A stretch of 64,000 nucleotides of DNA from Basidiobolus meristosporus CBS 931.73 (GCA_002104905.1 MCFE01000355.1:23991-87990), one strand, 5' to 3'. Shown: positions 1-58,870, numbered from the stretch's first letter. The notes: generated from the letters alone by a model not told the origin. Numbers and translations are program-made.

Positions 1-139
1 TGAAATCTGGGGTACAGTTATTTTTTGACAGTCTTTGCACAGTGTCCTGAAGAGATCAATACCTCTCAGTCACATGACTAAGAGTTTGTGACTGCCTTTT
101 GATGGGATCATCACAATAACTTTTCATGGGGAGCTATTA

Positions 140-461
140 ACCATAGTTGCATTCTTATCAAGAACCTGCTGTTACACTTCACAGTAGTTTTGACTTTGGA
201 AGCATTAGTACATGGACATCTAAAGGGATGCTAAGCCCACCTCATACTTCTGTAAAGATGCCAACTAAGTTAGGGATTGTAGCTTAAGAGTCATCCCTTG
301 CTAAGCTTGCGGCTTTATACCCTTAGGATCCAAGTTGAGATAAAACTCAAATATTCTTAGCAAGCATTTGCCAGAGGTTATTGTGCTCAATGAACACCCT
401 ACAAACAAAACACTTGGGAATTGTTGGACCATGTACTAGCTTGAATATAGTCATCACCACA
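140..461 (+). repeat. 3' remnant of an LTR-A-related long terminal repeat
   Basis: Matches 7880-8209 and 46660-46986, including the structured module and the terminal ...CACCACA. The 5' part is missing. Confidence 0.75.
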
Positions 462-2827
462 GTGCAAACTAAGTCAAGTAAGTACATATCATATTTGTCC
501 CATCTTAGCCTTCTGAACTTGGCATGCAAAATGATAGGTCTGCAGAATTAGGCTTGCTGATGGATTGTGAACCTATCACCCCCAGAGCAGTACCAAGCAT
601 GAGATCAGCAAGAACACAATATGAGAGGTGACAACACCCATGGATGGAAATACAAGAATACTCTATGGGGCTAAAAGGGCCCAGAAGTGACAATGAATGC
701 CTTACCCTATGAAAAATTATTGTAATGATCCCATCAAAAGGCCATCACATAGTTAAGGTTCCATGACTAAGAGGTACCGGTCCCATCAGGACACCATCCA
801 GAGACTGTTGCAAAATAATTGCACCACAGACTTCACCAAAAGCTTAGTCAAAATTTTTCATCACAACAATATATTAGTGGCTGTTGATTGGTTGCCTGCC
901 AATTTGCTCACTTTCTGATCCCAGGCACTCTATCACCTCCTGTGTTAATGTGAATTGATTGGCAATTACCATGTATTCACACTCCTTACTCACTGACTCA
1001 ACCATTGCTCTTACTTTTATGTAAACCATATGATTAGTATCTGCTGAAACTTTGGTTGTACCTCAATTGCCAATTTTATTGATCTATGCAAGCTCCTATA
1101 CCCTACACTAACATTAATCCCAACCCCACATTCAACAAGTAACTCCCTTAAAGTTCACCACTGAATAATTATTGCTGCTGCAATGCTCTGGTTCCACAAC
1201 TTTGGTGGGAGCCCAACAGCTTTATGCCACTGACCATTCACTGGTTCCCACATGTCCCGGCCTTCAGCTGGCACTGCAAGTTCTAGTACCTCATCTGCCA
1301 GTCTTTGCAATAAATCCTTGCAATATTCAGTGCGTTTTTCTGAGCACTGCTCTCAAAGAAGTGCTGCAACCTCTTGGTGTGCCAATTAATGTTCCAAAAC
1401 TCCACTGAAGGCATTGTGATAGTCTTTCAAGTTCTTGATATAGAAGCCTTGTCTGTAAGTGGGATCTCCACTCTTTCAACAATGGAGTATGTGGAGGCAG
1501 TGGTAGACAACTTGCCTTTTTCTGCAAGCTCAACTACCTTGCTGGAGTGTAGCTCAAATAGCTGCACTTCCAACTCTTGCAAAAACAACTATTTTCTTGT
1601 TGTACTGCTTCTTAGATATGATGGGATTCAGTCTGTTCTGGGCTTGTGGCATTAATTGTTGAGAACTGCTGTTTTTCTTGCATGCCTTCCTGTCTCAGGC
1701 TTGGGTAGACATTTTTCCCTTTAATGCTTTCTTTATCACTGCCATGTTATTCACTTATAGTTTGTCTGCATGCTTCTTGTAATGAACTACATTTTCTGCT
1801 TGATAAATCATGCCTTGACACATTTGTTTTGACCTACTTGTCCCTTGCTGACACTCTCCTGGCAACCTGATGTTTTTTTTGTGCTTGTTTCAAGCTCCCA
1901 ACTGTAGTTGAGATGGGCTCCTATGAAAGCCGCTGGTTTTTATCACTGCCAGATCCTTCACTCTACTTTGACTGAGTGCTTCTTAAGTGGCACTATGCTT
2001 TTTCCTTGATAGCTGTTGTGCCAATGCATCTGTGTCTGTCTGCTTGTCCCTACTTGGCACTCTTTCAGCTACCTGACATCTATTAGACTTGTTCCATCAT
2101 ACCGTGCCAGGGTGTGCGGCGCAATCCATGGTTGCAAAGAACAATTGGGCGCAATATTATAGCTACCAGAAGGAAGGATCATTCTTGGACAATTTTGCAC
2201 TATGCGGGACGATCTTGCACTCTATGGCACAATCTGACACAATGAGGTTGGAACGGATGATCACGCCAACTCGTAATGTTTGCATCACGTGCACAATTGG
2301 ATACCGCTATTATGGCAGGTAAAATCCGGTATTTGGATATGTTTCTTTAATGCAAATGGAAATAAATGTGTATCACACTATAAACTACACTAATACTTAC
2401 CATTTTGGTTACCCTCACTCCAATTGGACGGTATCTCAGTGGTTAATTGGTCCAAAAGTATCCTGAAGCGGGCAGCCCCCAATTGGCTCATTGACTACCA
2501 AAAAAGCTACCGGATTTGCCATCAAATATCCCATTTTGCTTATTGAGCAAGTAAATCCCTGATCCTAGTGATTGGACAAGGTGTCATAGCCAGCACGCGA
2601 GCGATTGTGTAGGTGCAAAACAGATCCAATAGCTGCACTGGTATTACAGATGACGTATATATATGCAGGGTGTTTATTTTTAGGGGTTCTGTCTCAAATG
2701 TGAGACGACCTTGATATTACTTATATCAAAAATTTGATGATCACTGATTTGCGACGGCTTGATCCTGATTGCAAAAAAAAAGGGTTGTTGGGATCATTAC
2801 AAATGTGAGCAATTCAAAGCAATCGCA

Positions 2828-4072
2828 TCATCTTCTCCTGGGTTTTTTTCTCACAGGGATTACTACTGAAGCATTTGGTAGTGACTCACTTTGCACACCT
2901 ATACTACTTCCTGGCTGACTATCATCTTGGCTACTTGTGTATTTGTAGTCAGTATTTTGCCTCCTAGTTGATGAATGCAATGCTGCAGCTTGGCTGCGCT
3001 GAATTGCTCCGGCTGAACAAACTGAACCAGCCTGTGGTGCCACGTGCTGACGCGTTCTTTTACTTGCCAAGGGCTCCGGTGGTTGAGGCACTTCATGTGG
3101 TCATCATCAGTCAGTTCACCAGAAGTAACTTGCTGATGGTCAGGCAAAACAGCACGCGCAGGCGCGCCTTGACGTGTTGAGATGGCCCTTGGCTGAGTTT
3201 GATGTGATGCTGCAAGTTGACGCAACTTGGTCCGCTCCAATGGACTCGTGTCTAAATGAGCAGTTTGGCAAGTTCTCGTAGTTTTGCTCTGAAGCGCGCG
3301 TTGACCCGACGCGTGTTGACTTGAGGCGTGGCATTCCGGTAAAGGGTGTTGGCGTACTCTGGACTGACGTGCGCCGGCACGCTGTGGTTGCAAGAGATGG
3401 TAGGGAATCCAGCAAGGCGTGCTGGCGCAATCTGGATGATGTTGCTTGCGGTCTGTATTCTTCCTCCTGAAGCTCACCATCTGATTCCTCAAGGTATTCA
3501 CTTACCCTCTGTCTGATACTTTGGAGCTGTTGCCTGGATGAGTCCTGTGTATATTGCTCTTGGAAGCCACTTAGCTCTACTAATATGTCACGTAGTACAT
3601 TAGTCATTTGAGGCAAAAACTCATTCAAAATCTCTTTGGTTCCCAAAGTTGAGGCACCAACGGACGCGTCCGGCCCGTACTGTGCAAATTGCGCGCAAAA
3701 TTGCTCCTGCGTGGCTTCTTTGTCAAATCCCCTCACTCTCAGCTCATTCTTGATTTCAATACTTGTCTTGTTATATATCTTTTTACATACATCGGCTGGC
3801 ATCTTGATGTAGAACTCATGCCACAGCTTTCTACTCAAATTCTTCTATCTTTGTCAACTCTCTGAGGTATCTAGTTCTGCTAGATTAATCAGTAGTGCCC
3901 AAATATCTGTATGAAGGCTCATCATAGACACTTGGGCCATACTAAAATCATTTGGCAAGAACTCAAACAGATCCGACATTGACTTTTCTGGTCCGGACCG
4001 CGCTTGTGAGCTGGGGGATAGGTTTTGTCTGGGTTGTACAAAAGATGAGTTGAGGCTTGGTATGGGGACCAA
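2828..4072 (-). pseudogene. Accessory ORF2 of PHIS copy 1 (Myb/SANT/MADF-like N-terminus, low-complexity tail, C-terminal RKKPRRR), disrupted
   Basis: ORF-track pieces 3854-4072, 3140-3838, 2899-3501 and 2828-3091 join into a homolog of 40720-41982. Contains the DIW...QRWKNL motif typical of Myb/MADF helices, plus stops and frameshifts. Confidence 0.7.
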
Positions 4073-4431
4073 AGCAACGGATTTGGATACTTATACAGCA
4101 GTATATTGACATCAACCTGGTCTTATATGAAATATATATGAAAACTAATGTGATTGTTGAAATCTCCATATATTATGCATGATGCATCTTGGATTGCGTT
4201 GACACGCATCAGATCACATCAATCGCAGATTTCCTATTTGATTATAGACCTATGATTAAAGCATCAATAAAAGTATCAAGGCATTGTTTGCGGATGATTT
4301 TTGCGACATAATGATGGGATACGTGGCAATTGATGGAGATTTAACCATAATGTATTAAAAATCAGATAAATAAGGTGGATTGCGCCAAGTCAATTCAAAC
4401 CGCCTTTATACAATCATCCACCAATTTTAAT

Positions 4432-5316
4432 ATGACTTACTCATCTGAATGGTCTTTTCTCTTCAATCCCATTACTACCACTGGATTTCCTTTTGACACA
4501 CCAGAGGAGATCTATTCCAAGTACTGTGGACCATCAACCCCAATCTACTCAAGGAGATCCCTTGTCATGCTTCTCTGCTATTACAAGAGCTATTGCCCTA
4601 CAAGGTTTCATCCCACCATCCATGGCGACAAAAGTCCTAGAAGCTTTCATTCCCAGCTGACAGCAATGGAGAACCACCTTGCAGAGGGTATGAATGACTT
4701 AGAGCAAGCTTGGAATACTAGGTTCAGAAGCTCCAATAGACTTCCATATTCCAGAGTGTTCAGCAACAGGTTCCATATCAGGAGTATTTTGGATACCTTC
4801 CCAGTGAGGATTAACAGACCTTCTAGAGGGCAGAGACACTTTTATTCTGGCAAGTACAAGGCACACTGTGTGAAGTTTCAAGCACTGTCTGATATTGAGG
4901 GTAACATCATCTGGTTTAGTGGGCCATTTGCTGGAAGTAGGCATGACAAAGCACTCTGGGTAGAGAATCATCCTGAATTCAGTAGAGGGGAGAAATGTGT
5001 GGCAGACTTAGCTTATATAGGAGAGGATTGTCAGAGATTAGGATGTATTACAGCTTATAGGAAGCCAAGGAATGGTGTACTTAGCAGGAAGCAGAAGCTC
5101 TACAATGAGATATTTAATCATTTCAGAGTAAGGGTAGAGCACACATTTGGATATCTGAAGAGATTCAGCATATTGGCAGGTAAATACAGAGGAAAGTCAT
5201 ATATAGGAGAAAACAGCAGAATAGGTAAAATAGTTAAGATACTTATTAATGCACAGTATGTTCATACAAGAAGACATCCACTGAGAGAAATGTGTTTGGA
5301 GCATTATGAAGAGTAA
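4432..5316 (+). CDS. DDE_Tnp_4 (PIF/Harbinger/IS5-like) transposase, 294 aa, intact
   Basis: Motifs ILDTFPVRINRP, FYSGKYKAH, GSRHD, VADLAYIG and RVEHTFGYLKRF. The ATG at 4432 gives the same length as the copy at 39476-40360. Confidence 0.92.
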   Translation: MTYSSEWSFLFNPITTTGFPFDTPEEIYSKYCGPSTPIYSRRSLVMLLCYYKSYCPTRFHPTIHGDKSPRSFHSQLTAMENHLAEGMNDLEQAWNTRFRSSNRLPYSRVFSNRFHIRSILDTFPVRINRPSRGQRHFYSGKYKAHCVKFQALSDIEGNIIWFSGPFAGSRHDKALWVENHPEFSRGEKCVADLAYIGEDCQRLGCITAYRKPRNGVLSRKQKLYNEIFNHFRVRVEHTFGYLKRFSILAGKYRGKSYIGENSRIGKIVKILINAQYVHTRRHPLREMCLEHYEE

Positions 5317-5928
5317 ATAAAGCAAGGAAAGCACTATTCTGAGTAACATAAGTAAGATTGAGTAAAATTACCAGTAACTGTATCATACCACTGGCATCAT
5401 GGTAGAAATTATAGTGCCAGATAGTGCCATAGGGTGCCAGATTGATCCAGCACTATAAACAGGCTGGCACTATGTGGCACTATCCAATGGAACAAGTCTA
5501 TTTAACACTTGTCTGGAGCTTTTGGCCCCGCTTTTAACAGGCTCTTAAGGAAGCCACTGGTTTTTAGCCATGGCACCCTTGTTCTTCTGCCGTTAATAGC
5601 TTCTCCTATTCTTAAGAAACTTTGTCAGCATACCAATGCTGGCCCAAGTTCTGTTTTCCTGTTTGAGTCCAGGATAATGCTCATTGAACAAGTCATGTGC
5701 ATACCGCTTTGCCTTGAGTTTTTGCTGTGTTTGCTACATTCTCATCTGCCTGAGCATAACAGTCTGCTTCCGGCTATGCAGAGGTTCTACATTGCCTACT
5801 TAACTGAGAGCCTGAGGAGTGTGTATTATTACCTTCAGTAGGTGCACTGTTAACATGGTCTTTTTTGGATGTAGCCCCACTTGTTGACCTGAATGTTGAA
5901 GCCAGCTGTTTTCCAACTGTTCTTCCGC

Positions 5929-6732
5929 TGTGGTGGTGTAGAGGTACTCCTGGGAGAAGCTACACAACTCAAGGTGTGTGAGGTGTCTGATGGGTGCAAT
6001 AACCTCTGTGTCTAAACTGCTGGTGTCTTTGTCAATATGTCACTATGGTAAAAGCTCCTGCTTCTCTAGCTTCCTAGGTGCTCCAAGTGTCTCCAAAGGC
6101 CTCTGTGTGTCTTGTGCACTACCCTGAAAAGCTCCTTGATGGCAGGTCTGAGATGTACTGTTGAAGGCAGGTGCAGTGATCAACTGCTAATCAATAAGGT
6201 AGAAGTGTTACTGATAGAAGGGATGATTTATTGATGAGGGATTGCTTTCCCTTAAATACTTTTCCTGATTGCCAAGTGATTACTAATGACAAGGTTCTAG
6301 AAGATTCTAGGTATCAGTGGAATTCTTGATGACATCACTACGAGCTAAAAATATGCCAAGAATGTCCTGGAAGGTTCTAAAAGGCACAGCACTCTCAACC
6401 AATCAGGAATCAATAGTCTGAAACCTGTGCAACATAGAAATACCATATATGGTATTGAAATGATAGAGATGGTAACACAGACCTAGGTCATGTGTCACGG
6501 GTACTGACGCGGGTACTTGCCTTATATAGATACATCTACTGATCACAAAGCTGAATAACATCTGGGATAACTAATGCTAATAACTAATCAGGGTAAACAT
6601 CATATGGGGATAATACTGATAATATGGGCAAAAGAAGAATGGGATAATACTGATAAGATAAAATATGGATAAGTATATCATAATGACTATATGAATAAAC
6701 TTGTCTGTGGGAGGTATGTTTACCCTACCACA
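5929..6732 (-). repeat. Solo LTR, family B (804 bp)
   Basis: TG...CA termini (TGTGGTAGGG...CACCACCACA on minus) and a 4-bp TSD CCGC (5925-5928 / 6733-6736). Similar to LTR-A. Confidence 0.85.
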
Positions 6733-7140: not shown

Positions 7141-8209
7141 TGTAGTGGGGTCATAGTGACACCCACTGACAGATGTCCTCATTCCCATATTTTCTACTTC
7201 CCTATATCTCTACTGCACTTATTGTAGTTTTACCCATTTGTCTCACCTGATCAGTACTATCCCATAAGCAAGTTAACTATTGCACCTGCTTACCTTATTG
7301 CACAAGTTATCCCTCACTTTATGTAAGATTACTGGTGATAAGTGCTTCTATATTTGAAAGTACCTGCGCCAGTACCTGTGACACATGATCAAACTGTGTC
7401 ACCATCCCTACCATTTCCATACCATATATGGTATCCCTATGCTACACAGGCTTCAGAGTACTAATTCCTGATTGATTGGATGTGCTGTGCCTCTTAGAAC
7501 CTTCCAGCACCTACTTAGAATACTCTTAGCCCATTCTGGTGTCATTAAGATTTCTATTTATCTTGGGAACCTTCTGGAACACCATGATTGGTAATCACCT
7601 TGTCAGTGAGAAAAGTATATAAGGGAGGCAATCCCTCAACAATAAATCATCATCCCTTTTATCAACATATCAACTAGTTGATTAGTGTGATCACTGCTAC
7701 CTGCGGCTACCTAAACTTCCAACCCCAGACCACAGGACACTCCCAGGAAACCATGCTGACAGCCAACTGACCTTGGAGGCACTACCTGTGAGGATTACTC
7801 AGAGTAGTTATCTTTTACTATATTTGATTCTTTGCCAAGTTTGTTCTTTTACAGGCAAAGATACTTTTCTGTCTTTGTAACTGTTGACCACAGCTGCACT
7901 CTTATCAAGTCCCTGCTGGTGGGGTTTACAGTTGTTTTGACTTTGGAAACTTTAGTACATTGTCATCTCAAAGGATGCTGAACCCAGCACATACTTTTAT
8001 TAAGACACAAACTAAGTTGGGGATTGTAGCTCCATAGTTTGCCCTTGACAAGCTTGCGGCTTTATTCCCCATCACATTAGATTAGAGACAGAGCCCAAGT
8101 ATTCCTAGCAAGCTTTTGCCAGAGATTATTACACCCAGTGAACACCCCACGCACAAAACACTTGAGAAGTGTTGGACATATCTCTCCCTTAGACCTATAC
8201 ACCACCACA
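7141..8209 (+). repeat. Solo LTR, family A (1069 bp)
   Basis: Termini TGTAGTGGGG...CACCACCACA, TSD ATGG/ATGG, TATATAA at 7616 and AATAAA at 7641. Near-identical layout at 45917-46986. Confidence 0.88.
7854..8063 (+). ncRNA. Candidate structured RNA module (copy A1) in the U5 part of LTR-A
   Basis: Same helices as 46631-46840 and 51313-51524; see findings. Confidence 0.55.
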
Positions 8210-8213
8210 ATGG

Positions 8214-38700: not shown

Positions 38701-39475
38701 AATAATATATCAAATGTAAAAGTATTGTATATACTTCTATATAATCTGGGCATAACAGACAAGTGGAATGGTTTTAGAGAAGCCCTAAGAGCATATGTGC
38801 AAAGCTTAGGGCTGTTTGGACAACTTATATGATTTCATGTTTTGGATATCTGATCCTTATTGGAAATAATTTGGTCTCACAGTTAGATCTGATCCAGATC
38901 AGCCATCAGGATCTTACTACTTGACTGTGATAAGGCCAGCCACTTGGAATTGTTGACCCCCTACACAATCATATAATGAGATTGTAAGAGTGTTTTCCTG
39001 ACTTTACTGCTTAATAGAGTAAAAAGCTTCACAGTGTTTTAGCAGTTTTTTGACAAGAACTGCATGGCATTCCAACAGTCTTAATGTACTCTTGATTATT
39101 AGACTTGTTCCATTGGATAGTGTCACATAGTGCCAGCCTGTTTATGGTGCCGGATCAATTGGGCACAGGTACCTGCCTAATGTAGAAGTATTTACATCAA
39201 GTAATCCTACATAAAGTGAGGGATAACTTATGCAATAAGGTAAGTAGGTGTGATGGTCAGCTGGCTAATGGTATTATGTTGATCAAGTAAGACAAATGTG
39301 ATCAAACTAAAATATTAGTAGTAGAAAGAGAGTCCATAGTGCCAGATTGGTCTGGCACTCTGCGGCACCATCTGGCACTATAATTTCTACAATGATGCCA
39401 GTGGTATGATACCGTTACTGGTAATTTTACTCAATCTTACTTATGTTGCTCAGAATAGTGCTTTCCTTGCTTTAT

Positions 39476-40360
39476 TTACTCTTCATAATGTTCCAGACAC
39501 ATTTCTCTCAGTGGATGTCTTCTTGTATGAACATACTGTGCATTAATAAGTATCTTAGCTATTTTACCTATTCTGCTGTTTTCTCCTATATATGACTTTC
39601 CTCTGTATTTACCTGCCAATATGCTGAATCTCTTCAGATATCCAAATGTGTGCTCTACCCTTATTTTGAAATGATTAAATATCTCATTGTAGAGCTTCTG
39701 ATTCCTGCTAAGCACACCATTCCTTGGCTTCCTATAAGCTGTAATACATCCTAATCTCTGACAATCCTCTCCTATATAGGCTAAGTCTGCCATACATTTC
39801 TCTCCTCTACTGAATTCAGGATGATTCTCTACCCAGAGTGCTTTGTCATGCCTACTTCCAGCAAATGGCCCACTAAACCAGATGATGTTACCCTCAATGT
39901 CAGACAGTGCTTGAAACTTCACACAGTGTGCCTTGTACTTGCCAGAATAAAAGTGCCTCTGCCCTCTAGAAGGTCTGTTAATCCTCACTGGGAAGGTATC
40001 CAAAATACTTCTGATATGGAACCTGTTGGTGAACACTCTGGGATATGGAAGTCTATTGCAGCTTCTGAACCTAGTATTCCAAGCTTGCTCTAAGTCATTC
40101 ATACCCTCTGCAAGGTGGTTCTCCATTGCTGTCAGCTGGGAATGAAAACTTCTAGGACTTTTGTTGCCATGGATGGTGGGATGAAACCTTGTAGGGCAAT
40201 AGTTCTTGTAATAGCTGAGAAGCTTAACAAGGGATCTCCTTGAGTAGATTGGGGTTGATGGTCCACAGTACTTGGAATAGATCTCCTCTAGTGTGTCAAA
40301 TGGAAGTCCAGTGGTAGTGATGGGATTGATGAGAAAAGACCATTCAGATGAGTAAGTCAT
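39476..40360 (-). CDS. DDE_Tnp_4 transposase, 294 aa, intact
   Basis: Near-identical to 4432-5316; catalytic D, D and E motifs retained. Confidence 0.92.
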   Translation of the reverse strand: MTYSSEWSFLINPITTTGLPFDTLEEIYSKYCGPSTPIYSRRSLVKLLSYYKNYCPTRFHPTIHGNKSPRSFHSQLTAMENHLAEGMNDLEQAWNTRFRSCNRLPYPRVFTNRFHIRSILDTFPVRINRPSRGQRHFYSGKYKAHCVKFQALSDIEGNIIWFSGPFAGSRHDKALWVENHPEFSRGEKCMADLAYIGEDCQRLGCITAYRKPRNGVLSRNQKLYNEIFNHFKIRVEHTFGYLKRFSILAGKYRGKSYIGENSRIGKIAKILINAQYVHTRRHPLREMCLEHYEE

Positions 40361-40719
40361 ACTGAAATTGATGGATGATTGTATAAAGGCGGTTTGAATT
40401 GATTTGGTGCAATCCGCGTTATTTATCTGATTTTTAATACATTATGGTTAAATCTCCATCAATTGCCATGTATCCCATCATTATGTCGCAAAAATCATCT
40501 GCAAACAATGCCTTGGTACTTTTATTGATGCTTTCATCATAGGTCTATAATCAAATAGGAAATCTGCAATTGATGTGATCTGATTCATGTCAACGCAAGC
40601 CAAGATGCATAATGCATAATATATGGAAAATTCAACAATCACATTAGTTTTCATATATATTTCATATAAGACCAGGTTGATGCCAAAATACTGCTGTATA
40701 AGTATACAAATCCGTTGCT

Positions 40720-41982
40720 ATGGTCCCCATACCAAGCCTCAACTCATCTTTAGTACAACCCAGACAAAACCCATCCCCCAGCTCACAGGCGCGGTCTGGA
40801 CCGGAGAAGTCAATGCCAAATCTGTTCAAGTTCTTGCCAAATGATTTTAGTATGGCCTAAGTGTCTATGATGAGCCTTCATACAGATATTTGGGCACTAC
40901 TGATTAATCTAGCAGAACTAGATACCTCAGAGAGTCAACAAAGATGGAAGAATTTGAGTAGAAAGCTGTGGCATGAGTTCTACATCAAGATGCCAGCCAA
41001 TATATGTAAAAAGATATATAAAAAGACAAGTATTGAAATCAAGAATGAGCTGAGAGTGATAGGATTTAACAAAGAAGCCGTGCGGGAACAATTTTGCGCG
41101 CAATATGCACAGTACGGGCCGGACAGGTCTGTTTGTGCCTCAACTTTGGGAACCAAAGAGATGTTGAATGAGTTTTTGCCTCAAATGACTAATGTACTAC
41201 ATGATATATTAGTTGAGCTAAGTGGCTTCTGAGAGCAATATTCACAGGACTCATCCAGGCAACAGCTCCAAAGTATCAGACAGAGGGTAAGTGAATACCT
41301 TGAGGAATCAGATGGTGAGCTTCAGGAGGAAGAATACAGACAGCAAGCAACATTGTCCAGATTGTGCCAGCACACCTTGCTGGATTCCCTACCATCTCTT
41401 ACAACCACAGCGCACCGGCGCACGTCAGTCCAGACCATGCCAACACCCTTTACCAGAACGCCCCGCGTCAAGTCAACGTGCATTGAGTCAACGCACGTCA
41501 GGTCAACGCGCGCACTTCAGAGCAAAACTATAAGAACTTGCCTAACTGCTCATTTAGACACAAGTCCATTGGAGCGGACCAAGTTGTGTCAACATGTGGC
41601 ATCACATCAAACTCAGCCAAGGGCCATCTCAACGCGTCAAGGCACGCCTGCGCGTGCCGTTTTGCCTGACCATCAGCGAGTTACTTCTGGTGAACTGACT
41701 GATGATGACCAACATGAAGTGCCTCAACCACCGGAGCCCTTGGCAAGTACAAGAACGCATCAGCACGTGGCACTACAGGCCGGTTCAGTTGGTTCAGTTG
41801 GAGCAATTCAGCACGGCCAAGCTGCAGCATTGCACTCATCAACTAGGAGGCAAAATACTGACTACAAATACACAAGTAGCCAGGATGATAGTCAGCCAGG
41901 AAGTAGTATAGGTGTGCAAAGTGAGTCACTACCAAATGCTTCAGTAGTAATCCCTGTGAGAAAAAAACCCAGGAGAAGATGA
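40720..41982 (+). pseudogene. PHIS ORF2 (420 codons, Myb/MADF-like, C-terminal NLS-like RKKPRRR) with two in-frame stops
   Basis: One reading frame from ATG 40720, with TAA at 40858 and TGA at 41230, both explicable by C>T. Confidence 0.75.
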
Positions 41983-42729
41983 TGCAATTGCTTTGAATTG
42001 CTCACATTGGTAATGATCCCAACAACCCTTTTTTTTTGCAATCCCAATCAAGCCATCGCAAATCAGTGATAATCAAATTTTTGATATATGTAATATCAAG
42101 GTTGTCTCACATTTGAGACAGAACCCCTATAAATAAACACCCTGCATATATATACATCATCTGTAATACCAGTGCAGCTATTGGATTTGTTTTGCACCTA
42201 CACAATTGCTTGCGTGCTAGCTATGACACCTTGTCCAATAACTAGGATCAGGGATTTACTTGCTCAATGGGCAAAATGGGATATTTGATGGCAAATCAGG
42301 TAGCTTTTTCAGTAGTCAATGAGCCAATTGGGGGCTGCCAGCTTCAGGATACTTTTGGACCAATTAACCACTGAGATACTGTCCAATTGGAGTGAGGGTA
42401 ACCAAAATGGTAAGTATCAGTTTAGTTTATAGTGTGATACACATTTATTTCCATTTACATTAAAGAAACATATCCAAATACCGGATTTTACCTGCCATTA
42501 TAGCGGTATCCAATTGTGCACATGATGCAAACATTACAAGTTGGCACGATCATCTGTGCCAACCTCATTGTGTCAGATTGTGCCATAGTGTGCAAGATTG
42601 TCCCGCATAGTGCAAAATTGTCCAAGAACAATCCTGCCTTCTGGTAGCTATAATATTGCGCCCAATTGTTCTTTACAACCGCAGATTGCGCCACGCACCC
42701 TGGCATAGTACAATGGAACAAGTCTATAT

Positions 42730-45916: not shown

Positions 45917-46986
45917 TGTAGTGGGGTGACAGTGACACCCACTGACAGATGTGCTCATTCCCTTATTTTCTACTTCCCTATATCTCTACTACACTTATTT
46001 AGTTTTATCCCATTTGTCTTACCCAATCAGTACTATCCCATAAGCCAGTTGACTATCACACCTGCTTACCTTATTGCATACGTTACCCCTCACTTTATGT
46101 AATATTACTAGCTATAAGTGTTTCTATATTAGGCAAGTACCCACGCCAGTACCTGTGACACATGAACAACCTGTGTCACCATCCCTACCATTTCCATACT
46201 ACATATGGTATCCCTATGTTACACAGGCTTCAGAATACTGATTTCTGATTGGTTGGATGTGTTGTGCCTCTTAGAACCTTCCGGCACCTACTTAGTACAT
46301 TCTTAGGTCATTCTGATGTCATTAAGATTTCTATTGATATCCTGAACCTTCTGGAACACCTTGATTAGTAATCACTTAGCCAGTAAGAAAAGTATATAAG
46401 GGAGGCTATCCCTCAACAATAAATCATCATCCCTTTTATCAATATACCAACTTGTTGATTAGTGTGATCACTGCTACCTGCTGCTACCTGAACTTCTAAC
46501 CCTAGACCACAGGACACTCCCAGGAAACCGCGCTGACAGCCAACTGACCTTGGAAGCACTACTTGTGAGGAATACTCAGAGTAGGTATCTTTTATTATAT
46601 TTGATTCTTTCCCAAGTTTGTTCTTGTATAGGCAAAGATACTTTTCTGTCTTTGTAACTTTTGACCACAGCTGCATTCTTATCAAGTCCCTGCTGGTGGA
46701 GTCTACAGTTGTTTTGACTTTGGAAGCTTTAGTACATTGTCATCTCAAAGGACGCTGAACCCGGCACATACTTTTGTTAAGACGCCAACTAAGTTGGGGA
46801 TTGCAGCTCAATAGTTTTCCCTTGACAAGCTTGTGGCCTTATTCCCCTTCACATTAGATTAGAGACAGAACCCAAGTATTCCTAGCAATCTTTTGCCAGA
46901 GGTTATTGCACCCAGTGAACACCCCGCACACAAAACACTTGAGAAGTGTTGGATGTATCTCTCCCTTGTACTTATACACCACCACA
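45917..46986 (+). repeat. Solo LTR, family A (1070 bp)
   Basis: TG...CA termini, TSD ACGC/ACGC; collinear with 7141-8209. Confidence 0.9.
46631..46840 (+). ncRNA. Candidate structured RNA module (copy A2, least decayed)
   Basis: Helices GCAAAGA/TCTTTGT, AGCTGCA/TGCAGCT, TCTTA/TAAGA, GAC..TG/CA..GTC and CCAAC-TAA-GTTGG. Confidence 0.6.
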
Positions 46987-47174
46987 ACGCTTCTTTTGCA
47001 CTTGTTTTGAGCTCTCAGCATATGCTATGATGGGCTCCAGGGATAGCTGCTGGTTTTAAGTGTGCCAGGTCCTTCACTGCTACTCTAACTGAGTGCATCT
47101 TGAGTAAGAGTATGCTCTTTCCTGGGTAAATGTTGTGTTGGTATATATGTGTCTGCCTGCTTTCCCCTTATTGG

Positions 47175-48224
47175 CACTTTTTACTTCTGGGGAACTGACT
47201 GATGATGACCAACATGAAGTGCCTCAACCACCGGAGCCCTTGGCAAGTACAAGAACGCATCAGCACGTGGCACTACAGGCTGGTTCAGTTAGTTCATTTG
47301 GAGCAATTCAGCATGGCCAAGCTGCAGCATTGCACTCATTAACTAGGAGGCAAAATACTGACTACAAATACACAAGTAGCCAAGATGATAGTCAGCCAGG
47401 AAGTAGTATAGGTGTGCAAGGTGAGTCACTACCAAATGCTCCAGTAGTAATCCCTGTGAGAAAAAAACCCAGGAGAAGATGATGCAATTGCTTTGAATTG
47501 CTCACATTTGTAATGATCCCAACAACCCATTTTTTTGCAATCCAAATCAAGCAATTGCAAATCAGTGATCATCAAATTTTTGATATAAGTAATATCAAGG
47601 TTGTCTCACATTTGAGACAGAACCCCTATAAATAAACACCCTGCATATATATATGTCATCTGTAAAACCAGTGCAGCTATTGGATCTGTTTTGCACCTAC
47701 ACAATCACTTGTGTGCTAGCTATGACACCTTATCCAATCACTAGGATCAGGGATTTACCTGCTCAATGGGCAAAATGGGATATTTGATGGCAAATCAGGT
47801 AGCTATTTCAGTAGTTAATGAGCCAATTGGGGGCTGCCAGCTTCAGGATACTTTTGGACCAATTAACCACTGAGATACTGTCCAATTGGAGTGAGGGTAA
47901 CCAAAATGGTAAGTATCAGTGTAGTTTATATTGTGATACACATTTATTTCCATTTACATTAAAGAAACATATCCAAATACCAGATTTTACCTGCCATAAT
48001 AGCGGTATTTGATTGCGCAAGTGATGCAAACATTACAAGTTGGCGCAATCATCTGTGCCAACCTCATTGTGTCAGATTGTGCCATAGTGTGCAAGATTGT
48101 CCTGCATAGTGCAAAATTGTCCAAGAACAATCCTGCCTTTTGGTAACTATAATATTGCGCCCAATTGTTCTTTACAACCGCCGATTGCGCTGCGTGCCCT
48201 GGCACGGTACAATGGAACAAGTTT
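47175..48224 (-). mobile_element. PHIS copy 4, truncated (ORF2 3' end plus left terminus)
   Basis: Near-identical to 41680-42725; ends ...ATGGAACAAGTTT followed by AAT. Confidence 0.85.
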
Positions 48225-48229
48225 AATAT

Positions 48230-49754: not shown

Positions 49755-50445
49755 TGTAGTGGGGTCACAGTGACACCCTCTGACAGATGTGCTCATTCCC
49801 ATATTTTCTACTTCCCTTATTTTAGTTTTATCCCATTTGTTCTACTTGATCAGTACTATCCCATAAGCTGGCTGACTATTGCACCTGCTTAGCTTACTGC
49901 TTAAGTTATCCCTCACCTTATTTAAGATTACATGATATAAGTGCCTCCAAATTTGGCAAGCACCCATGCCAGTACCTGTAAAACATGACCAAACCATATC
50001 ACCATTCCTACCATTTTCATACCATATAGTATCCCTATGTTACAAAAGCTTCAGAATACTGATCCCTGATTGGTTGGGTGTGCTGTGCTTCTTTGAGCCT
50101 TCAGGAACCTACTTAGAACATTCTCAGCTCATTCTGATGTCATTAAGACTTCTGTTTCACCACTGGAACCTTCTGGAACACCATGATTAGTAATCACTTT
50201 GCCAGTGTGAATGATATGTAAGGGGGGCAATCCCTCAACACTAGATCATCATCCCTTTTATCAATATACCAGGTTGTTGATTAGTGTGAGCACTGCTACT
50301 TGCTGCTACCTGAACTTTTAACCCCAGACCATAGGGCACTTGCAGGAAGCTGTGCTGACATCCAACCTACCTTGGAGGCACTACTTGCAGTAATACTCAG
50401 AGTAGGTGTCTTTTATTATATTTGATTCTTTCCCAACTTTGCTGC
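49755..50445 (+). repeat. 3'-truncated LTR-A, within a minus-strand Tnp2 remnant (49200-51110)
   Basis: Starts TGTAGTGGGGTCACAG and matches 7141-7840; stops just before the structured module. Confidence 0.8.
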
Positions 50446-51312
50446 AATTACATGCTGACTTCTGTACATTCTCTCTGTGGAAAGAGGATGTTCTTAGTGC
50501 TGGTGTTTGGGTAATAATAATGTATGAGAGTTATGGAGTAAGTCCCCTGGATCTCACACATTTGACAGCAATACCGTCTATTATGCCTAGAAAACCTGCT
50601 ATCATCCTGATGGCCAGGGTATCTCCAATGCAGATAGTAATATGAGCATTTACATGGCAGCCATTAACTATTATCCTGCTGGAAAGCATGCAAAATTCAT
50701 TCAGCAATGGATACAGGTAGCTATCCAGGTTGGATGGTGATTTAGGCCTAGATACCTGTGAGACTACCATGAGATTATTGCTCTGATGCCATTACATGAA
50801 TGGCAGATTTGATTGATGAGAATCAGTGGCCAGCAGGAATTGCTGGTAGAGTACATGTTTTATGAGAATCCATCAAGTCCTAAGGCAAAGGCATGGTCAT
50901 ACATACCTTCAAAGGAGCCCTTGCTTATTAGCTGTTGTAATGTTTGCCATCAAATTTATTGGATATGATTGCACTTAATTGATACTGAGTGCAGTACTGT
51001 ATAGCTTTGCAACACTTGTTGAATTGCATCAGATTACTCAGACAGGTATTATTGGAATATATTCAGAATGTGAACAATGTTCTCCCTCAATGGTGGTGGA
51101 TTCCATTGAAATAATTATGATTTAATTCAACATACAAATGCAAATATTCAGAGACAATTTTTTTTTAATTATTTTTTGCTTTATCTCAAGATTTTTGACT
51201 CAAATCATCTGTTTAATCCAAAATACAAAATAAAAAAATAAATAAATCTCAAAGACAAAATTTTTGTTTCACAAGTATCACCCATCATCTTTTCCTAGTC
51301 TTGTCCTATAAA

Positions 51313-51524
51313 GGCAAAGATACTTTATCTTTGTAAAACTATTGGTCTAAGCTGCATTCACTTTATTACCCTGCTGGTGGAGTTTACAGTTGTTACAGTA
51401 TTGGAAGCTTTAGTACAATACTCTATTAAAGGATGTCAAAACCAGTACCTTCTGAAGTGATGCTAACTTATTTAAGTTGGGGATTGTGGCTCAATAGTTG
51501 TATTCTTGACATACTGGTGGCTTT
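51313..51524 (+). ncRNA. Candidate structured RNA module (copy G) in the Gypsy 5' leader, ~70 nt before the gag ATG
   Basis: Divergent from the LTR-A copies but retains all helices through compensatory changes. Confidence 0.6.
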
Positions 51525-51592
51525 ACAAACCCACAGTCTAGTGTAGTGTATTCCAGTATCCCTTGCAAGTTCATCTGCCTTCCTCTCCTACC

Positions 51593-52525
51593 ATGTCCAA
51601 CCTAGAGCTGAACTTTGCCCAGCTCATGGCTGCCTTTACCCAACTGCAGCAAGACCATGCAGACCTCAGAAGCACTCTTGCTCAGTTCCTGAACCAAAGT
51701 GTCCAGCAAACTAGCCATGTCCCAGTCTACCAAGAACCCAAGTATACTCCTGCTACCAAGTTCAATGGCTCTCAGAATGAATTCCATGGCTTCATCAACA
51801 TGGTGAAGAACAATCTTGCACTCCAGCCCAACCGGTACCTCACTGACCAGGCCAAAGTTGGTTTCATCTCCAACCTGCTTACTGGTACAGCTCTGAAGTG
51901 GTTCTCCCCATTAGTAGAGACCAACTCTCCCCTCCTCAGAGACTACCAAGCTTTTCTCACTGAAATGGAGCTAACATTTGGTAACCTTGACCAAGCCAGA
52001 ACTGCTGCCAACAAGATCAAGACCCTCAAACAAGGGAACAAACCAGCATCTGTCTATGCCTCAGAATTCCAACAACTCTCCAGTGACCTCAGCTCCTGGG
52101 GTCAAGCAGCCTTGATAAACCAATTCCAAGATGGCCTCAATGTTGAAGTTTGTGATCTGCTACTCACACTCCCAGATCCAGATACATTGGTTGAAGCTAT
52201 GCACCAAGCAATCCAGTGTGATAACAGACTATTCCAGAAGAAGCAAAAGAACTGTCAAAGACACATTCCTGTTGCAGTCCCAGCTCCTCCTGCTCCCCAA
52301 GTCACTCCAGAAGATCCTATGTGGATTGATAGTGCCAAATACAAGAAACTATCAAAGAGTGTAAAGTCCAGATGTCAACAAGCCAACCTCTGTCTATACT
52401 GTGGCCAACCAGGTCACTTTGCCAAGTCCTGCCCCAACAAGAAGTTCAGCTTCAAGCTGATGCAGTCCTCCAGTAACCAACCTGATTCAGATCTGTTGGG
52501 AAACTCCAATGTCCAGTTGCACTGA
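51593..52525 (+). CDS. gag: Retrotransposon Gag (sushi/PEG10-like, CCHC knuckle), intact, 310 aa
   Basis: KFNGS..., KVGFISNLLTGTALKWF and CLYCGQPGHFAKSCP. Confidence 0.9.
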   Translation: MSNLELNFAQLMAAFTQLQQDHADLRSTLAQFLNQSVQQTSHVPVYQEPKYTPATKFNGSQNEFHGFINMVKNNLALQPNRYLTDQAKVGFISNLLTGTALKWFSPLVETNSPLLRDYQAFLTEMELTFGNLDQARTAANKIKTLKQGNKPASVYASEFQQLSSDLSSWGQAALINQFQDGLNVEVCDLLLTLPDPDTLVEAMHQAIQCDNRLFQKKQKNCQRHIPVAVPAPPAPQVTPEDPMWIDSAKYKKLSKSVKSRCQQANLCLYCGQPGHFAKSCPNKKFSFKLMQSSSNQPDSDLLGNSNVQLH

Positions 52526-52542
52526 CAGGCTTGCAACTGGAC
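52498..52542 (+). promoter_or_regulatory. -1 programmed ribosomal frameshift signal
   Basis: Slippery G GGA AAC in the gag frame, 6-nt spacer, perfect 11-bp stem GTCCAGTTGCA/TGCAACTGGAC. The pol frame is -1 relative to gag. Confidence 0.88.
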
Positions 52543-55500
52543 CCATCTATGAAAATCCAGCATATCCAAGAATCTTCCTTTGCCTCAAAATCTATCCAGT
52601 CCTTGAGAATGCCTGTCAAAATCCAGATCCCTGACTCCAATCCTGTCTCAGTCCTAGCCCTGGTTGATTCTGGTGCTTCATTCTGTTTTATTGACCAAGC
52701 CTTTGTCCAGAAGCACTCTATTACTGTTACCTTGAAATCCTGTCCAGTCCAAGTAGAAGTTACTGATGGAAGATCACTCTGCTCTGGTGCCATTACCCAT
52801 GAAACATGCGTACTCCAGCTGTCCAGTACTGCACACCAAGAAAGAATTGCCTTCAACATCATCAACTCACCACACTATCCTATTGTGCTTGGAAGCTCAT
52901 GTCTGAGCTAGCACAATCCAAGTATTGATTGGAAATCCAAGATCCTGTCATTCACCAGATCCCACCAAGTCAACTCCATGCAATCTCCAGACCCTGATAA
53001 CTGTGAAAAGACTGTTTCCAACAGTTCAACAGCCCAAGATACCTTGCCAGCTGAAGGAGCCCCCTCAGCAACTATACCAGCCAAGTACCAAGAGTTTGCC
53101 CATGTCTTTGACAAGAAGAAAGCAGAACTCCTCCCTGACCATTGGCCTTATGACTGCCTTATTGACCTTGAAGATGAAAAAGTCCCTCCATTTTGCCCAA
53201 TATAAAACCTCTCCCAGCTGGAGTTGAAAGAACTCCATGGTTATAATCAAGAAAACCTCCAGAAGGGTTTTATTCAGCACTCCAAATCACCTGTTGGAGC
53301 CCCAATCCTCTTTGTCAAGAAGAAGGATGGCACTCTCAGAATGTGTGTGGACTACCATGCGCTGAATAAGATCACAGTCAAGAACCACTACCCCCTGCCC
53401 CTTCTCAACACACTGTTGGATCAGCTATCTGCTGCTCAAGTCTTCACCAGGATAGACTTGAGAGGAGCTTACAATCTTGTCAGAATCAAGCCTGGTGATG
53501 AATAGAAAACTGCCTTTTGCACAAGATATGGTCACTTTGAGTACAAAGTAGTGCCATTTGGCCTCACCAATGCCCCTGCTGTATTTCAACACCTCATGAA
53601 TGACATATTCTGTGAATACCTTGACCAGTTTGTGGTAATCTACCTTGAAGATATTCTCATATACTACAAGAGCCAAGATGAACATGATGAACATGTCAAG
53701 AAAGTATTGAGAAAACTAGACTCTGCTGGTCTCTATGCCAAGCTAGAAAAGTGTGAATTTGCCCAGAGAGAAGTGGAATTTTTTGGTTACCTCATCAGCC
53801 CTGAGGGAACAAGAATGGACCCAAAGAAAGTTGACTCAGTCCAATCCTGGAAAACTCCAAGCTCAGTCAAGGAAGTACAATCCTTCCTGGGATTTGCCAA
53901 CTTCTATTGCAGGTTCATTGCCAACTACTCCAAGATAGTCACCCCTCTGACAAAGCTTACCCAGAAGAACATACCTTTTGCCTGTAATGAGGAGCAATCC
54001 ACCTCATTCAACCAACTCAAGAAATCTTTACTGAAGGCCCCCCTGCTTGCCCACCTGACCTTGAGAAGCAATTCATAGTGGAGACTGATGCTTCTGATTT
54101 TGCCCTTGGTGCTATACTCTCCCAGTATGATGAAGACAATGTGTTGCACCCCATTGCATTCTACTCTCAGAAGTTTTCCCCTGCAGAGATCAACTATGAT
54201 ATCTATGATAAGGAGTTGCTTGCCATCATTGTAGCCTTTGAGCAATGGAGACACTACCTGGATGGTGCAAAACACCAAATCAAAGTCTTCTATGACCATA
54301 AGAACCCTGAGTACTTTGCAACTTCCAAAGTATTAAGCCAGAGACAAGCCAGATGGTCACTCTTCCTGTCCAGCTTTGACTTTACTATCACCTATAGACC
54401 TGGTGCAAAGCAAGGAAAGCCTGATGCCCTGTCCAGAAAAAAGGAATATGCCCTAGAAGAGGGAGATGATGCCTGTTGGCAAATGGGACACCCATTGCTG
54501 AGGAAGAAGCATTTTGAGATTCTTGCCACCCAGTCCTCAAGTCTTGTCATCCCTTCATTCCTAGTAAGGATATCAGAATCCCAAGCCTCTGATATGACTT
54601 CCAGCACCGTCAAGAAATATCTGGAATCCCCAGTTGGGCCCCCTCCCAGGTTCCCAAACATCCATAACCTGCATTTGGTAAACAACCTCATCTACCACAA
54701 GCAGCAGCTTTATGTCCCAGACCCTGCCACCCAGCTAGACATCATTAAGTCTTGGCATGATTCAATGGCTGCAGGCCACTTTAGTACTGCCAAAACCTTG
54801 AATACTATCAAAAGAGATTTCTGGTGGCCTAGAATGATAACTCTTATCAAAGAGTACACTCTGACTTGTGATATTTGCAACCGTGCAAAACCAGCCAGAC
54901 ACCAGCCCTATGGACTTCTTCAGCCCTTGCCTATCCCAGAACACCAATGGAGATCTATATCTGTGGACTTCATTACTGACCTCCCTGAGTCCTGTGGCTT
55001 CAATGCTATACTTGTAGTGGCTGACTGGCTGACCAAGATGGCTCACTTTATCCCTTGCTGTAAGAACACTGATGCAAAAGAAACCGCTGCATTAGTCCTC
55101 AAAAATATTTTCCACCTTCATGGTATCCCCAGTGATAATGTGTCAGATAGTGGCCCACAGTTTGTGTCCAAGTTTTGGAAACACTTCATGCAATACCTTG
55201 GTGTTCAAGTCAATCACTCCACTGCCTACCATCCTCAATCTGATGGCCAGACTGAATGAATCAACCAAATACTGGAGCAATACCTCCAGTGCTATATCAA
55301 TTACCAGCAAGACAATTGGGTAGATCTACTCCCTGTTGCTGAGTTTGCCTACAACAACTCAAGCCATAGTGTAACTGGTTTTACACCATTCTATGCAAAC
55401 TATGGATTCCACCCTCAGTTTGATATCCAGATTCCAACAAACCCAATGAGCCCACATGCGGCTGAACATGCCAAAGCAATCCAGGACATCCAGAATACCC

Positions 55501-56045
55501 TCAAGGAAGAGCTATCCTTAGCTCAGGAAAGCTACAAGAAATTTGCCAATCTAAAGCAGCATCCCACCCCTGATCTTAATGAAGGAAATTCTGTATGGTT
55601 GCTCAGAAGAATTATCAGCACCAACCGCCCTTGTGACAAATTGGATTTCAAGAAACTTGGTCCCTTCAGGATCAAGCAGAAGCTTAGCCCTATAGTATAT
55701 CAGCTACAGTTACCAGCAAGTATGAAAATCCATGATACTTTTCATGTGTCCCTCCTGGAGCCGTATTGCAGGAACACCTTGCCAAACCGGCAAGAAGCAA
55801 AGCCCCAAGCCATCCAGGTTGACCAACATCAAGAATTTGAAGTTAAACAGATTCTAGACTCCAAGTATATCCGGTCAAAGCTGTACTACTTAGTAGACTG
55901 GATTGGTTATGGTCCAAGTGACCAAACATGGGAACCAGCTACCCATCTCACTAATTGTCAAGAACTAGTTACCCATTTCCACCAGCAATATCCTGCAAAA
56001 CCTGCCCCAAAGGGAAACAGAGCTTTGCCTGAAAGAGGAGAATAG
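52498..56045 (+). pseudogene. pol: Gypsy pol (PR LVDSGA, RT YLED, RNase H, integrase HHCC/DDE, chromodomain) with 4 stops and 1 frameshift
   Basis: Stops at 52909, 53203, 53503 and 55257, and a frameshift near 54055. Chromodomain EFEVKQILDSK...YYLVDWIGYGPSDQTWEP. Confidence 0.92.
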
Positions 56046-56553
56046 TGTCATGATCACATGACAACCATGAGCACCCATGCCAAGTTTCAGCTTCCTAGCT
56101 CAATTTCTAAGAGATTCCTTCTAGAACCTTCTACCACCTTCCGGAAAGTTCCTGACCATTCCAAACCATTGTTAAGCAATGGAACATTCCATGGAAGCTT
56201 CCCATCATATTTTTCATAGTCCAGTACTATAAATGGAAATACCAGGTCACATGATCAGGTGACCCAATCCATTTCCCCATCCTGTCTCAGTGCTGTGCCA
56301 TCTATGTCATTATCCCCAGCACCATTGCTGTGCCTCACCCCACAACCCCATTAGTTTTAGCCAAAATCTCTTGGCATCAGTATAGCCAAAAATTACATAT
56401 AGTCCTATCCCCCCTTAAGTATTCCTCAGTCTGATAAACACAGGGTTTGAATAAACAGCCTTGCCTTGAATCCTGCCTTGCCTTGATGGTCCACACCTAA
56501 GTCCTTTCCTGCTGTGCCTAGCTTTTCCTCCTGCCTTATGTCTATTCATAACA
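56046..56553 (+). repeat. 3' LTR of the chromovirus (508 bp)
   Basis: Follows the PPT; TG...CA termini with short inverted ends; AATAAA inside; abuts a MITE half. Confidence 0.75.
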
Positions 56554-56728
56554 ATAAAATGGATTTTCTCCAGCACAATGGGTGAAACACAGGGGCTGCT
56601 TTGCATGAAGATGCAGAGCTATGTTTCACACTCTGTGGCCAAGTATAGGTTCACTTGGCCTCCCTGGTGCACTATGGCATCATTTGGCACTCATGGCTCC
56701 ATGTGGCACTATCCAATGGAACAAGTCT
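56554..56728. mobile_element. Right-hand fragment of a foldback MITE
   Basis: Matches 44075-44242; ends ATGGAACAAGTCT followed by AAT. Confidence 0.8.
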
Positions 56729-58664: not shown

Positions 58665-58870
58665 AGCCACTGGTTTGTCATGGGAGAGTCACTGAGCCAC
58701 AATCCCTAGCTTGATGGGCATCTTAATGGAAGTGTATGCATGATTATTACAATTTGGGAATCCCATGTGCTAGGACCTTGAAAGTCAGAATAGATATGAA
58801 CCACCAGCTGGTTCTCAATGAGAGTGCAGCTTGCTTCAATTTTGGCAAAGACAAAGAGGCATCTCCTGTC
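58665..58870 (-). ncRNA. Highly diverged fifth copy of the structured RNA module
   Basis: Minus strand reads ...AGCTGCACTCTC...CCAGCTGGTGG...TTAAGATGCC...GGGATTGTGGCTCAG...GACAAACCAGTGGCT. Confidence 0.45.

Follow-up and report, generated by a model that had tools for sequence, protein, structure and literature searches.

Two families of LTR retrotransposons of a fungus have in common a stretch of ~200-340 bases, placed ahead of the capsid gene, that contains a probable RNA fold. Both are represented in the window (the whole 64-kb stretch of DNA that was analysed), one by solo copies of an LTR, called here LTR-A, and the other by a degenerate chromovirus. The multi-helix fold predicted for this stretch, hereafter the module, matches no described RNA family and is probably real, at about three chances in four, with helices P6, P4, P2 and P1 carrying the evidence. 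As to its function, we tentatively suggest, at a probability of roughly 0.4, that the tract is a structured domain of the sense-strand genomic RNA acting as a genome-selection signal, i.e., in packaging or dimerisation.

An earlier note on the same DNA had listed five homologous tracts, and all five are real: a profile search of the window recovers them with E values of 6e-72 (c3), 1e-70 (c2), 2e-60 (c4), 1e-53 (c1) and 4e-18 (c5, on the minus strand) (Table 1). By BLAST, c3 is 93% identical to c2, 78% to c1 and 71% to c4 (E 7e-26), and c5 is marginal (E 4e-4). Copies c1, c2 and c5 are decayed; in the last of these P3 is intact and the remaining helices are degraded. Homology extends beyond the module into a longer cassette. 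LTR-A positions 645-925 match positions 253-524 of L001, a chromovirus locus from outside the window, at 76% identity (BLAST, E 1.5e-55), and weaker motif matches continue to ~46901; on the chromovirus side the homology begins ~55 nt past the primer-binding site and ends shortly ahead of the gag ATG. Outside the cassette, no similarity was found between LTR-A and LTR-C, the chromovirus LTR. A coding explanation of the cassette was considered and rejected, as any frame would be interrupted by the variable lengths and by loop indels of 3, 14 and 17 nt.

Table 1. Retroelement features and module copies in the window, with the helices predicted for copies c3 and c4
Feature	Position	Strand	Remarks
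3' part of LTR-A-like LTR	110..461	+	78% to LTR-A; module copy c1 inside
Module copy c1	~110-296	+	CM 77 bits; P1 missing, several pairs broken
Second solo LTR-A	7141..8210	+	90.7% identical; 4-bp duplication ATGG; contains module copy c2
Module copy c2	7854-8043	+	CM 177 bits
Solo LTR-A	45917..46987	+	1071 bp; TG..CA ends; 4-bp duplication ACGC on flanks
Whole common cassette in LTR-A	46561..46901	+	LTR positions ~645-985
Module copy c3, within solo LTR-A	46631..46820	+	LTR positions ~715-905; CM 180 bits
c3, helix P1	46632-46640/46647-46655	+	
c3, helix P2	46656-46663/46809-46816	+	
c3, helix P3	46669-46675/46802-46808	+	
c3, helix P4	46677-46686/46773-46782	+	
c3, helix P5	46690-46699/46758-46767	+	
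c3, helix P6	46714-46722/46735-46743	+	loop GAAGCTTTAGTA
c3, helix P7	46784-46789/46793-46798	+	
LTR-A-like LTR, 5' 705 bp	49755..50441	+	84%; ends just before module at unrelated repeat (50441-~51270)
Module copy c4, chromovirus leader	51313..51503	+	CM 199 bits
c4, helix P1	51314-51322/51326-51334	+	
c4, helix P2	51337-51344/51492-51499	+	
c4, helix P3	51350-51356/51485-51491	+	
c4, helix P4	51358-51367/51451-51460	+	
c4, helix P6	51395-51403/51416-51424	+	
c4, helix P7	51463-51469/51474-51480	+	
Ty3/gypsy chromovirus gag-pol, degenerate	51593..56045 (ORFs 51563-56045)	+	capsid, CCHC knuckle, PR, RT, RNase H, IN, chromodomain (Pfam scan, ORF list)
LTR-C, chromovirus's own 3' LTR	56047..56556	+	complete, 510 bp, TGTCAT..ATAACA
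Degenerate module copy c5	58683..58870	-	nhmmer E 3.6e-18; CM only 14.6 bits, E 0.25

The element that the earlier note named LTR-A is a genuine solo LTR, as follows from its ends (first letters TGTAG, last letters CCACA), from the 4-bp duplications and from a paralogous empty site at 1870/1874. DNA contigs from public runs show it at very high copy number in the source organism and also in two further organisms. A TATA-like GTATATAAGG is found at ~46391, ~240 nt 5' of the module; the transcript start, placed from this TATA box only, would be 30-40 nt past it, so that the module would lie ~200 nt from the 5' end of the LTR-A transcript. In one public-run contig (X8), from another organism, an LTR-A-like LTR end (equivalent to 46986) is followed by TATT and TGGCACCCAACGTGGGG, a tRNA-type primer-binding site that resembles the tRNA-Lys(CUU) site of gypsy elements. 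The LTR-A family is therefore primed differently from the chromovirus. This tRNA-type site was not found anywhere in the 64-kb window, nor was any primer site downstream of copy c1. A search of public RNA runs for the stretch gave no match, and the contigs that cover LTR-A are DNA. The possibility that LTR-A is a compound of an older LTR, its old primer site and a leader was also tried and rejected, as the putative old site has no complementary match of at least 8 nt.

LTR elements lie nested in the window. Two direct repeats, each ~1 kb long, at 41681-42726 and 47181-48228 (94-97% identical, 5.5 kb apart) look like the LTRs of a further element, the internal region of which hosts the solo LTR-A insertion. 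Another retroelement is present in inverted copies ~34-39 kb apart (94%; 3295-5456 versus 39336-41497, 2.2 kb, and 2084-3098 versus 41712-42726, 1.0 kb), and differences between copies are mostly transitions. The LTR-A-like fragment at 49755-50441 stops at LTR position ~705, and the 5'-truncated chromovirus leader (51273-51536) resumes at the equivalent of ~660-690; both breaks are near the same homologous point, ~830 bp of other repeat and an AT-rich tract lie between them, and there is no target duplication. Ectopic recombination in the common cassette is one possibility.

The reading frame of the window's chromovirus is broken into several ORFs, and its 5' LTR and primer-binding site are missing. 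LTR-C is nevertheless recognised as the element's own LTR, because its positions 335-507 (56381-56553) correspond to L001:19-191 at 88.5% identity. It carries the self-primer motif AGTCTGATAAA at 56428-56438, ~30 nt past a TATA-like CATATAG. In L001, the same AGTCTGATAAA at 67-77 is complementary over 11 nt to positions 194-204, right after the LTR end. In this chromovirus clade, a stretch of 9-11 nt located 30-40 nt past the LTR TATA box is complementary to the letters directly following the LTR end (..ACA, then GTTTGATCAGAC). Both partners are altered together in L021 (AGTCTGATCAA and TTGATCAGACT, 11 nt; 2728-2738 with 2960-2970), and L025 has a 9-nt complementarity (386-394 with ~520). In self-priming of the Tf1 type, the 5' end of the mRNA pairs with the primer-binding site (PMC2864245). 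The 11-nt complementarity of the predicted 5' end to the post-LTR site, with partners that co-change among relatives, is thus the signature expected of a Tf1-like self-primer.

The order of elements in L001 is the LTR end (..CATAACA), GTTTTATCAGACT at the primer-binding site (192), the module (315-502) and the gag ATG (601); L002 has the same order, and in both loci the module starts ~120 nt 3' of the primer-binding site. In these chromoviruses the module accordingly sits in the leader upstream of gag, 3' of the primer-binding site, and not in the region between the RNA 5' end and that site (R-U5). We rejected the notion that it forms the R/U5 end of the LTR of the chromovirus itself, in view of the ..ACA LTR ends of L001, L002 and L021 and the self-priming site upstream of the module. 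Of the earlier proposal that both families have an RNA fold under selection in their 5' leaders, the leader position and the fold survive, and the element map had to be redrawn: the module is 3' of a self-priming site in the chromovirus, and within the LTR itself (R/U5), 5' of a tRNA-type site, in LTR-A.

A 39-nt piece of the LTR-C U3 (56201-56239, CCCATCAT..CTATAAATGG, then a GGTCAC/GTGACC hairpin) resembles 51281-51318 and L001:283-320, i.e., the leader before and into P1, at 77-79% (E 0.003-0.005), and may reflect chance or a trace of promoter duplication. In a chromovirus family without the module (P0014), every pol-to-gag interval (the LTR region) holds a 117-aa ORF with no Pfam match (L004:221-574 and 5915-6268; same in L005-L013).

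Three relatives outside the window, L001, L002 and L023, have the module. L001 is the nearest of them, its Gag being 77% identical to the window's; that of L002 is 49% identical to the window's, and the Gag of L023 is 62% identical to that of L002. In searches with the gag protein the module-bearing relatives were P0001, P0002 and P0047 only, and the last search added no close relative. The module was not found in the next clades of the gag tree, represented by P0003 (L021), L025, P0004, P0008, P0014 and P0048, nor in the locus of P0049; the L022 locus (P0010) covers only 50 nt upstream of gag and is uninformative. Sister chromovirus clades (L021, L025) pass from the primer-binding site to gag in ~50 nt. 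Since they manage without it, the module looks like an acquired accessory and no universal requirement, which leaves room for the alternatives to packaging discussed below. DNA-pattern scans of metagenome contigs gave 0 and then 2 matches, and a scan of viral contigs 1 match; all three were discarded as chance matches, being unrecognised by the covariance model, and L026 and L028 as read are without the module. Identity of the module between clades is 60-66%, equal to that of the gag coding sequence (58-61%), and between L002 and L023 the module is 86% identical as against 62% for gag.

The predicted architecture consists of a 5' hairpin, P1, and a ~165-nt multi-branch domain shut by the stacked helices P2 and P3; inside the domain are P4, P5, a short UUG/CAA extension and the hairpins P6 and P7. 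The MFE structure of c4, RNAalifold on a plain MAFFT alignment and the helices drawn in the earlier note, which had advised the RNAalifold check, agree on this arrangement. With the plain alignment A4 of the six best copies, RNAalifold gives 48 pairs, 14 of them changed on both sides; with the P6 segment alone, six of seven pairs are changed on both sides. The individual pairings claimed from the window copies were verified base by base, namely TCTTA/TAAGA against TCACTTTA/TGAAGTGA, GAC..TG/CA..GTC against AGTATTG/CAATACT, AGCTGCA with TGCAGCT, TGTAGCT or TGTGGCT, CCAAC/GTTGG against CTAACTT/AAGTTGG, the GCAAAGAT hairpin with its varying loops, and the closing helix AACTATTG/CAATAGTT.

Hairpin P6 displays one invariant loop, GAAGCUUUAGUA, on four stems, again checked base by base: AGTATTG/CAATACT in c4 and L001, TGAC..TG/CA..GTCA in LTR-A, CTTGATTAAA/TTTAATCAAG in L002 and TGATCAA/TTGATCA in L023. 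P4 comes in three variants (TCTTA/TAAGA, TCACTTTA/TGAAGTGA and CCT.G/C.GG(G)). In L001 both P4 strands have the LTR-A form within flanks that are c4-like, so that two strands ~90 nt apart have changed together between close relatives. P2 is AACTATTG/CAATAGTT, GATAA(A)TTGC/GCGATTATC in L002 or GG(A)TAATTGC/GTGATTACC in L023, and three of its pairs are changed on both sides between c4 and L002. P1 keeps its stem around a loop of 3 to 6 nt, one A-U pair being replaced by G-C in L023. In P3 the only changes seen are transitions resulting in G.U, and the CUGG/CCAG of P5 is invariant and so uninformative. Across the curated helices G.U outnumber A.C by 30:5 (18:1 in intact lineages), which indicates that the folded molecule would be the sense RNA, and neither DNA nor the antisense strand.

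The strands CUGGUGGAGUUUACAGUUGUU, CAAAGGA, ACCAG and GGGGAUUG, which join the helices, are invariant. The unpaired motifs CTGGT(G/T)GAGTTTACAGTTGTT, CTTTAGTA, CAAAGGA and ACCAG are invariant in all intact copies, the outside relatives included. In most genomic copies of LTR-A, position 46660 is A, so that P2 is again perfectly paired, and position 46703 is T, which brings back the invariant GAGTTTACAG. A pseudoknot between CCAC and GTGG, which had been considered for the LTR-A copies, is not supported: it is absent in c4, L001, L002 and L023, and position 46668 is changed from C to A in many genomic copies. CAAAGGA could pair with the P1 3' strand AUCUUUG (46647-46655 / 46741-46748, and the same motifs in L023); in L023, where this strand has ACCUUUG, the match improves to 6 perfect pairs, and such pairing would give an alternative conformation of the leader.

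The statistical support for the covariation is moderate. In the alignment made with MAFFT only (A3), 70.8% of cells are paired and 15 pairs are changed on both sides, against 34-48% and 5-12 in slid controls; in the alignment fitted to the covariance model (A5), the values are 74.5% and 22, against 34-50% and 5-8. Shuffled controls are exceeded as well. Because a single sequence of the set had supplied the structure, and the aligned sequences are relatives, 200-nt windows of gag coding sequence from the same elements were used as a further control. When no fitting is applied, the module reaches no more than roughly double the background. Given equal freedom of register, it is 84-92% paired, compared with 75.9 ± 4.2 (maximum 85.5) for 80 control windows, i.e., at or just above the top of the gag windows, and all 7 pairs of P6 are changed yet paired, with a maximum of 6 in a control helix. 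Compensatory changes of the kind expected of a leader domain are thus present, and of moderate strength by this control. The MFE z-scores, -0.35 and -0.52, are not significant, folding energies being no better than those of shuffles. There are about four independent lineages only, which cannot suffice for proof of the R-scape grade.

The fold has no counterpart among known families, in line with the Rfam check advised earlier. Rfam 15 gave no match at the gathering score in the 64-kb window (hammerhead, HDV, twister, pistol, hatchet and VS ribozymes, group I and II introns, RNase P/MRP, snRNA, 5S, tRNA-like RNAs and riboswitches included), and none in L001, L002 and L023 at E values up to 1 with lax filters. 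ARAGORN found no tRNA.

The location of the module on opposite sides of the primer site in the two families, with different primers, argues that its function is a property of the leader RNA and not of priming, a role that the earlier note had allowed for and that now appears unlikely. Under the packaging and dimerisation reading, the CCHC zinc knuckle of Gag would bind the loops and the exposed G/U-rich strand (GGUGGAG); the P6 loop, with its AAGCUU palindrome in the window's lineages, may start dimerisation of the RNA; and the full-length RNA would thereby be packaged into particles. As a self-contained cassette, it could work before the primer-binding site, as in LTR-A, or after it, as in the chromovirus, and this would explain a possible exchange between families. 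The CCHC knuckle of Gag is seen in the window; that Gag binds the module is our inference. The dimerisation part is weak: AAGCUU is found in the P6 loop of c3, c4 and L001, but c1 and c2 have it in mutated form and L002 and L023 lack it. A bolder version, which we regard as doubtful, has the cassette as a portable Gag-recognition module moved between families by recombination, with the high-copy, tRNA-primed LTR-A packaged by chromovirus Gag or competing for it.

Among the alternatives, the simplest one denies any function to the RNA: the similarity would be due to recent descent and recombination between families, and the covariation to chance in AT-rich related sequences. The gag windows, which under the same procedure give 76% paired cells and many apparent double changes, the insignificant z-scores and the small number of independent lineages all speak for it. 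Yet the paired fraction of the module exceeds all 80 control windows for three of the four reference sequences, P6 stands above every control helix, loops are conserved while stems are replaced, G.U prevails over A.C, and across gag proteins ~50% identical the module is conserved as well as the coding sequence or better; we thus hold this explanation to be unlikely, if the strongest of those competing with ours. Slightly less likely is control of translation, in which the module, as an IRES-like element or enhancer, would bring ribosomes or initiation factors to the start codon of gag, the structured leader (>550 nt in LTR-A elements) blocking scanning. IRES activity has been reported for several retroelement leaders; the module lies 5' of gag in every case, with 18-103 nt between it and the start codon, it can stand on either side of the primer site, and upstream AUGs in some copies (c4) would penalise scanning. 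On the other hand, the spacing to the AUG varies, neither a polypyrimidine nor an 18S-complementary feature is found, sister clades translate gag from ~50-nt leaders, and in LTR-A the primer site and internal sequence lie between module and gag.

A position-independent cassette in the transcripts of two families, with conserved internal-loop motifs, might also serve the fate of the RNA (nuclear export, stability or protection of the unspliced transcript, as CTE, RTE and MTE do), but known transport elements are usually 3' of the coding region, and the module has no sequence or Rfam resemblance to them, so we consider such a role improbable. A shade less probable again is an accessory role in reverse transcription, in priming or strand transfer, or its fossil form, in which the tract is the R-U5 and primer site of an older self-priming LTR and P2 the old duplex of 5' end and primer site. 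That the clade is self-priming, with an 11-nt complementarity covarying between L001 and L021, that a TATA-like motif stands ~30 nt before the 5' strand of P2 in c4 and L001, and that this stretch resembles part of LTR-C (E 0.003) would suit it; but the actual primer duplex is elsewhere (56428 and the primer-binding site), and the module follows the primer site in one family and comes before a site of the tRNA type in the other. Besides, L002 and LTR-A have not kept the TATA-like motif, the 3' strand of P2 has no LTR end (..ACA) before it, and the module is without similarity to the R-U5 of LTR-C. Finally, the undescribed ribozyme that had been proposed, comparable to the hammerheads of plant retrozymes and self-cleaving or otherwise active in the leader or LTR, has found no supporting sign: a multi-helix junction with invariant unpaired nucleotides would befit a ribozyme, but no Rfam ribozyme is detected at the gathering score or at E up to 1, and a cut in the leader would detach the cap and, in the case of the chromovirus, also R-U5 and the primer-binding site from gag-pol, which makes this explanation extremely improbable.

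Cis-acting RNA signals of LTR retrotransposons have been defined experimentally for a few systems, i.e., Ty1, Ty3, Tf1 and retroviruses, and to our knowledge almost nothing is known of such signals in early-diverging fungi. The module is compact and conserved, its fold can be tested and its invariant nucleotides are clear-cut, and its two architectures, before and after the primer-binding site, combined with two priming systems make a natural experiment on leader functions that do not depend on position. Should it be a Gag-recognition signal, it would offer a handle on cross-mobilisation between families and on the abundance of LTR-A; if it is moreover portable, one family would hitch-hike on another by means of a common RNA domain while LTR ends and priming are kept apart. 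Were it not functional, it would be a warning about apparent covariation in related AT-rich repeats.

Several known systems invite comparison. Like HIV-1 Psi/DIS, MLV Psi and the Ty1 and Ty3 leaders, the module is a multi-helix domain in the 5' leader before gag, with exposed conserved G-rich strands, apical loops, one palindromic loop (AAGCUU in the window's lineages) and a Gag that has a CCHC knuckle. It differs from them in having no sequence or Rfam relationship, in lying, in LTR-A, within the LTR and before the primer site, and in its palindrome, which L002 and L023 do not have. Tf1 of Schizosaccharomyces pombe resembles the host chromovirus in the complementarity of 11 nt at the predicted RNA 5' end to the post-LTR site, and in the module, likewise, distant strands are brought together by a closing helix, P2; unlike the Tf1 structure, however, the module is separate, 3' of the self-priming duplex, and is found also in a tRNA-primed family.

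The Cassandra TRIM carries a 5S rRNA-like module in its LTR, and plant retrozymes a hammerhead ribozyme. LTR-A is similar to both in having a discrete structured-RNA module inside the LTR, and so in every solo LTR, but its module matches no host RNA gene or ribozyme and in the chromovirus is outside the LTR. Leader or packaging regions common to autonomous and non-autonomous LTR elements occur in BARE1/BARE2 and RIRE2/Dasheng. Here too a leader segment is common and the rest differs, with LTR-A, seen only as LTRs, at very high copy number; whereas pairs of the BARE1/BARE2 type share LTR ends and primer site, the two families described here differ in LTR ends, U3 and mode of priming.
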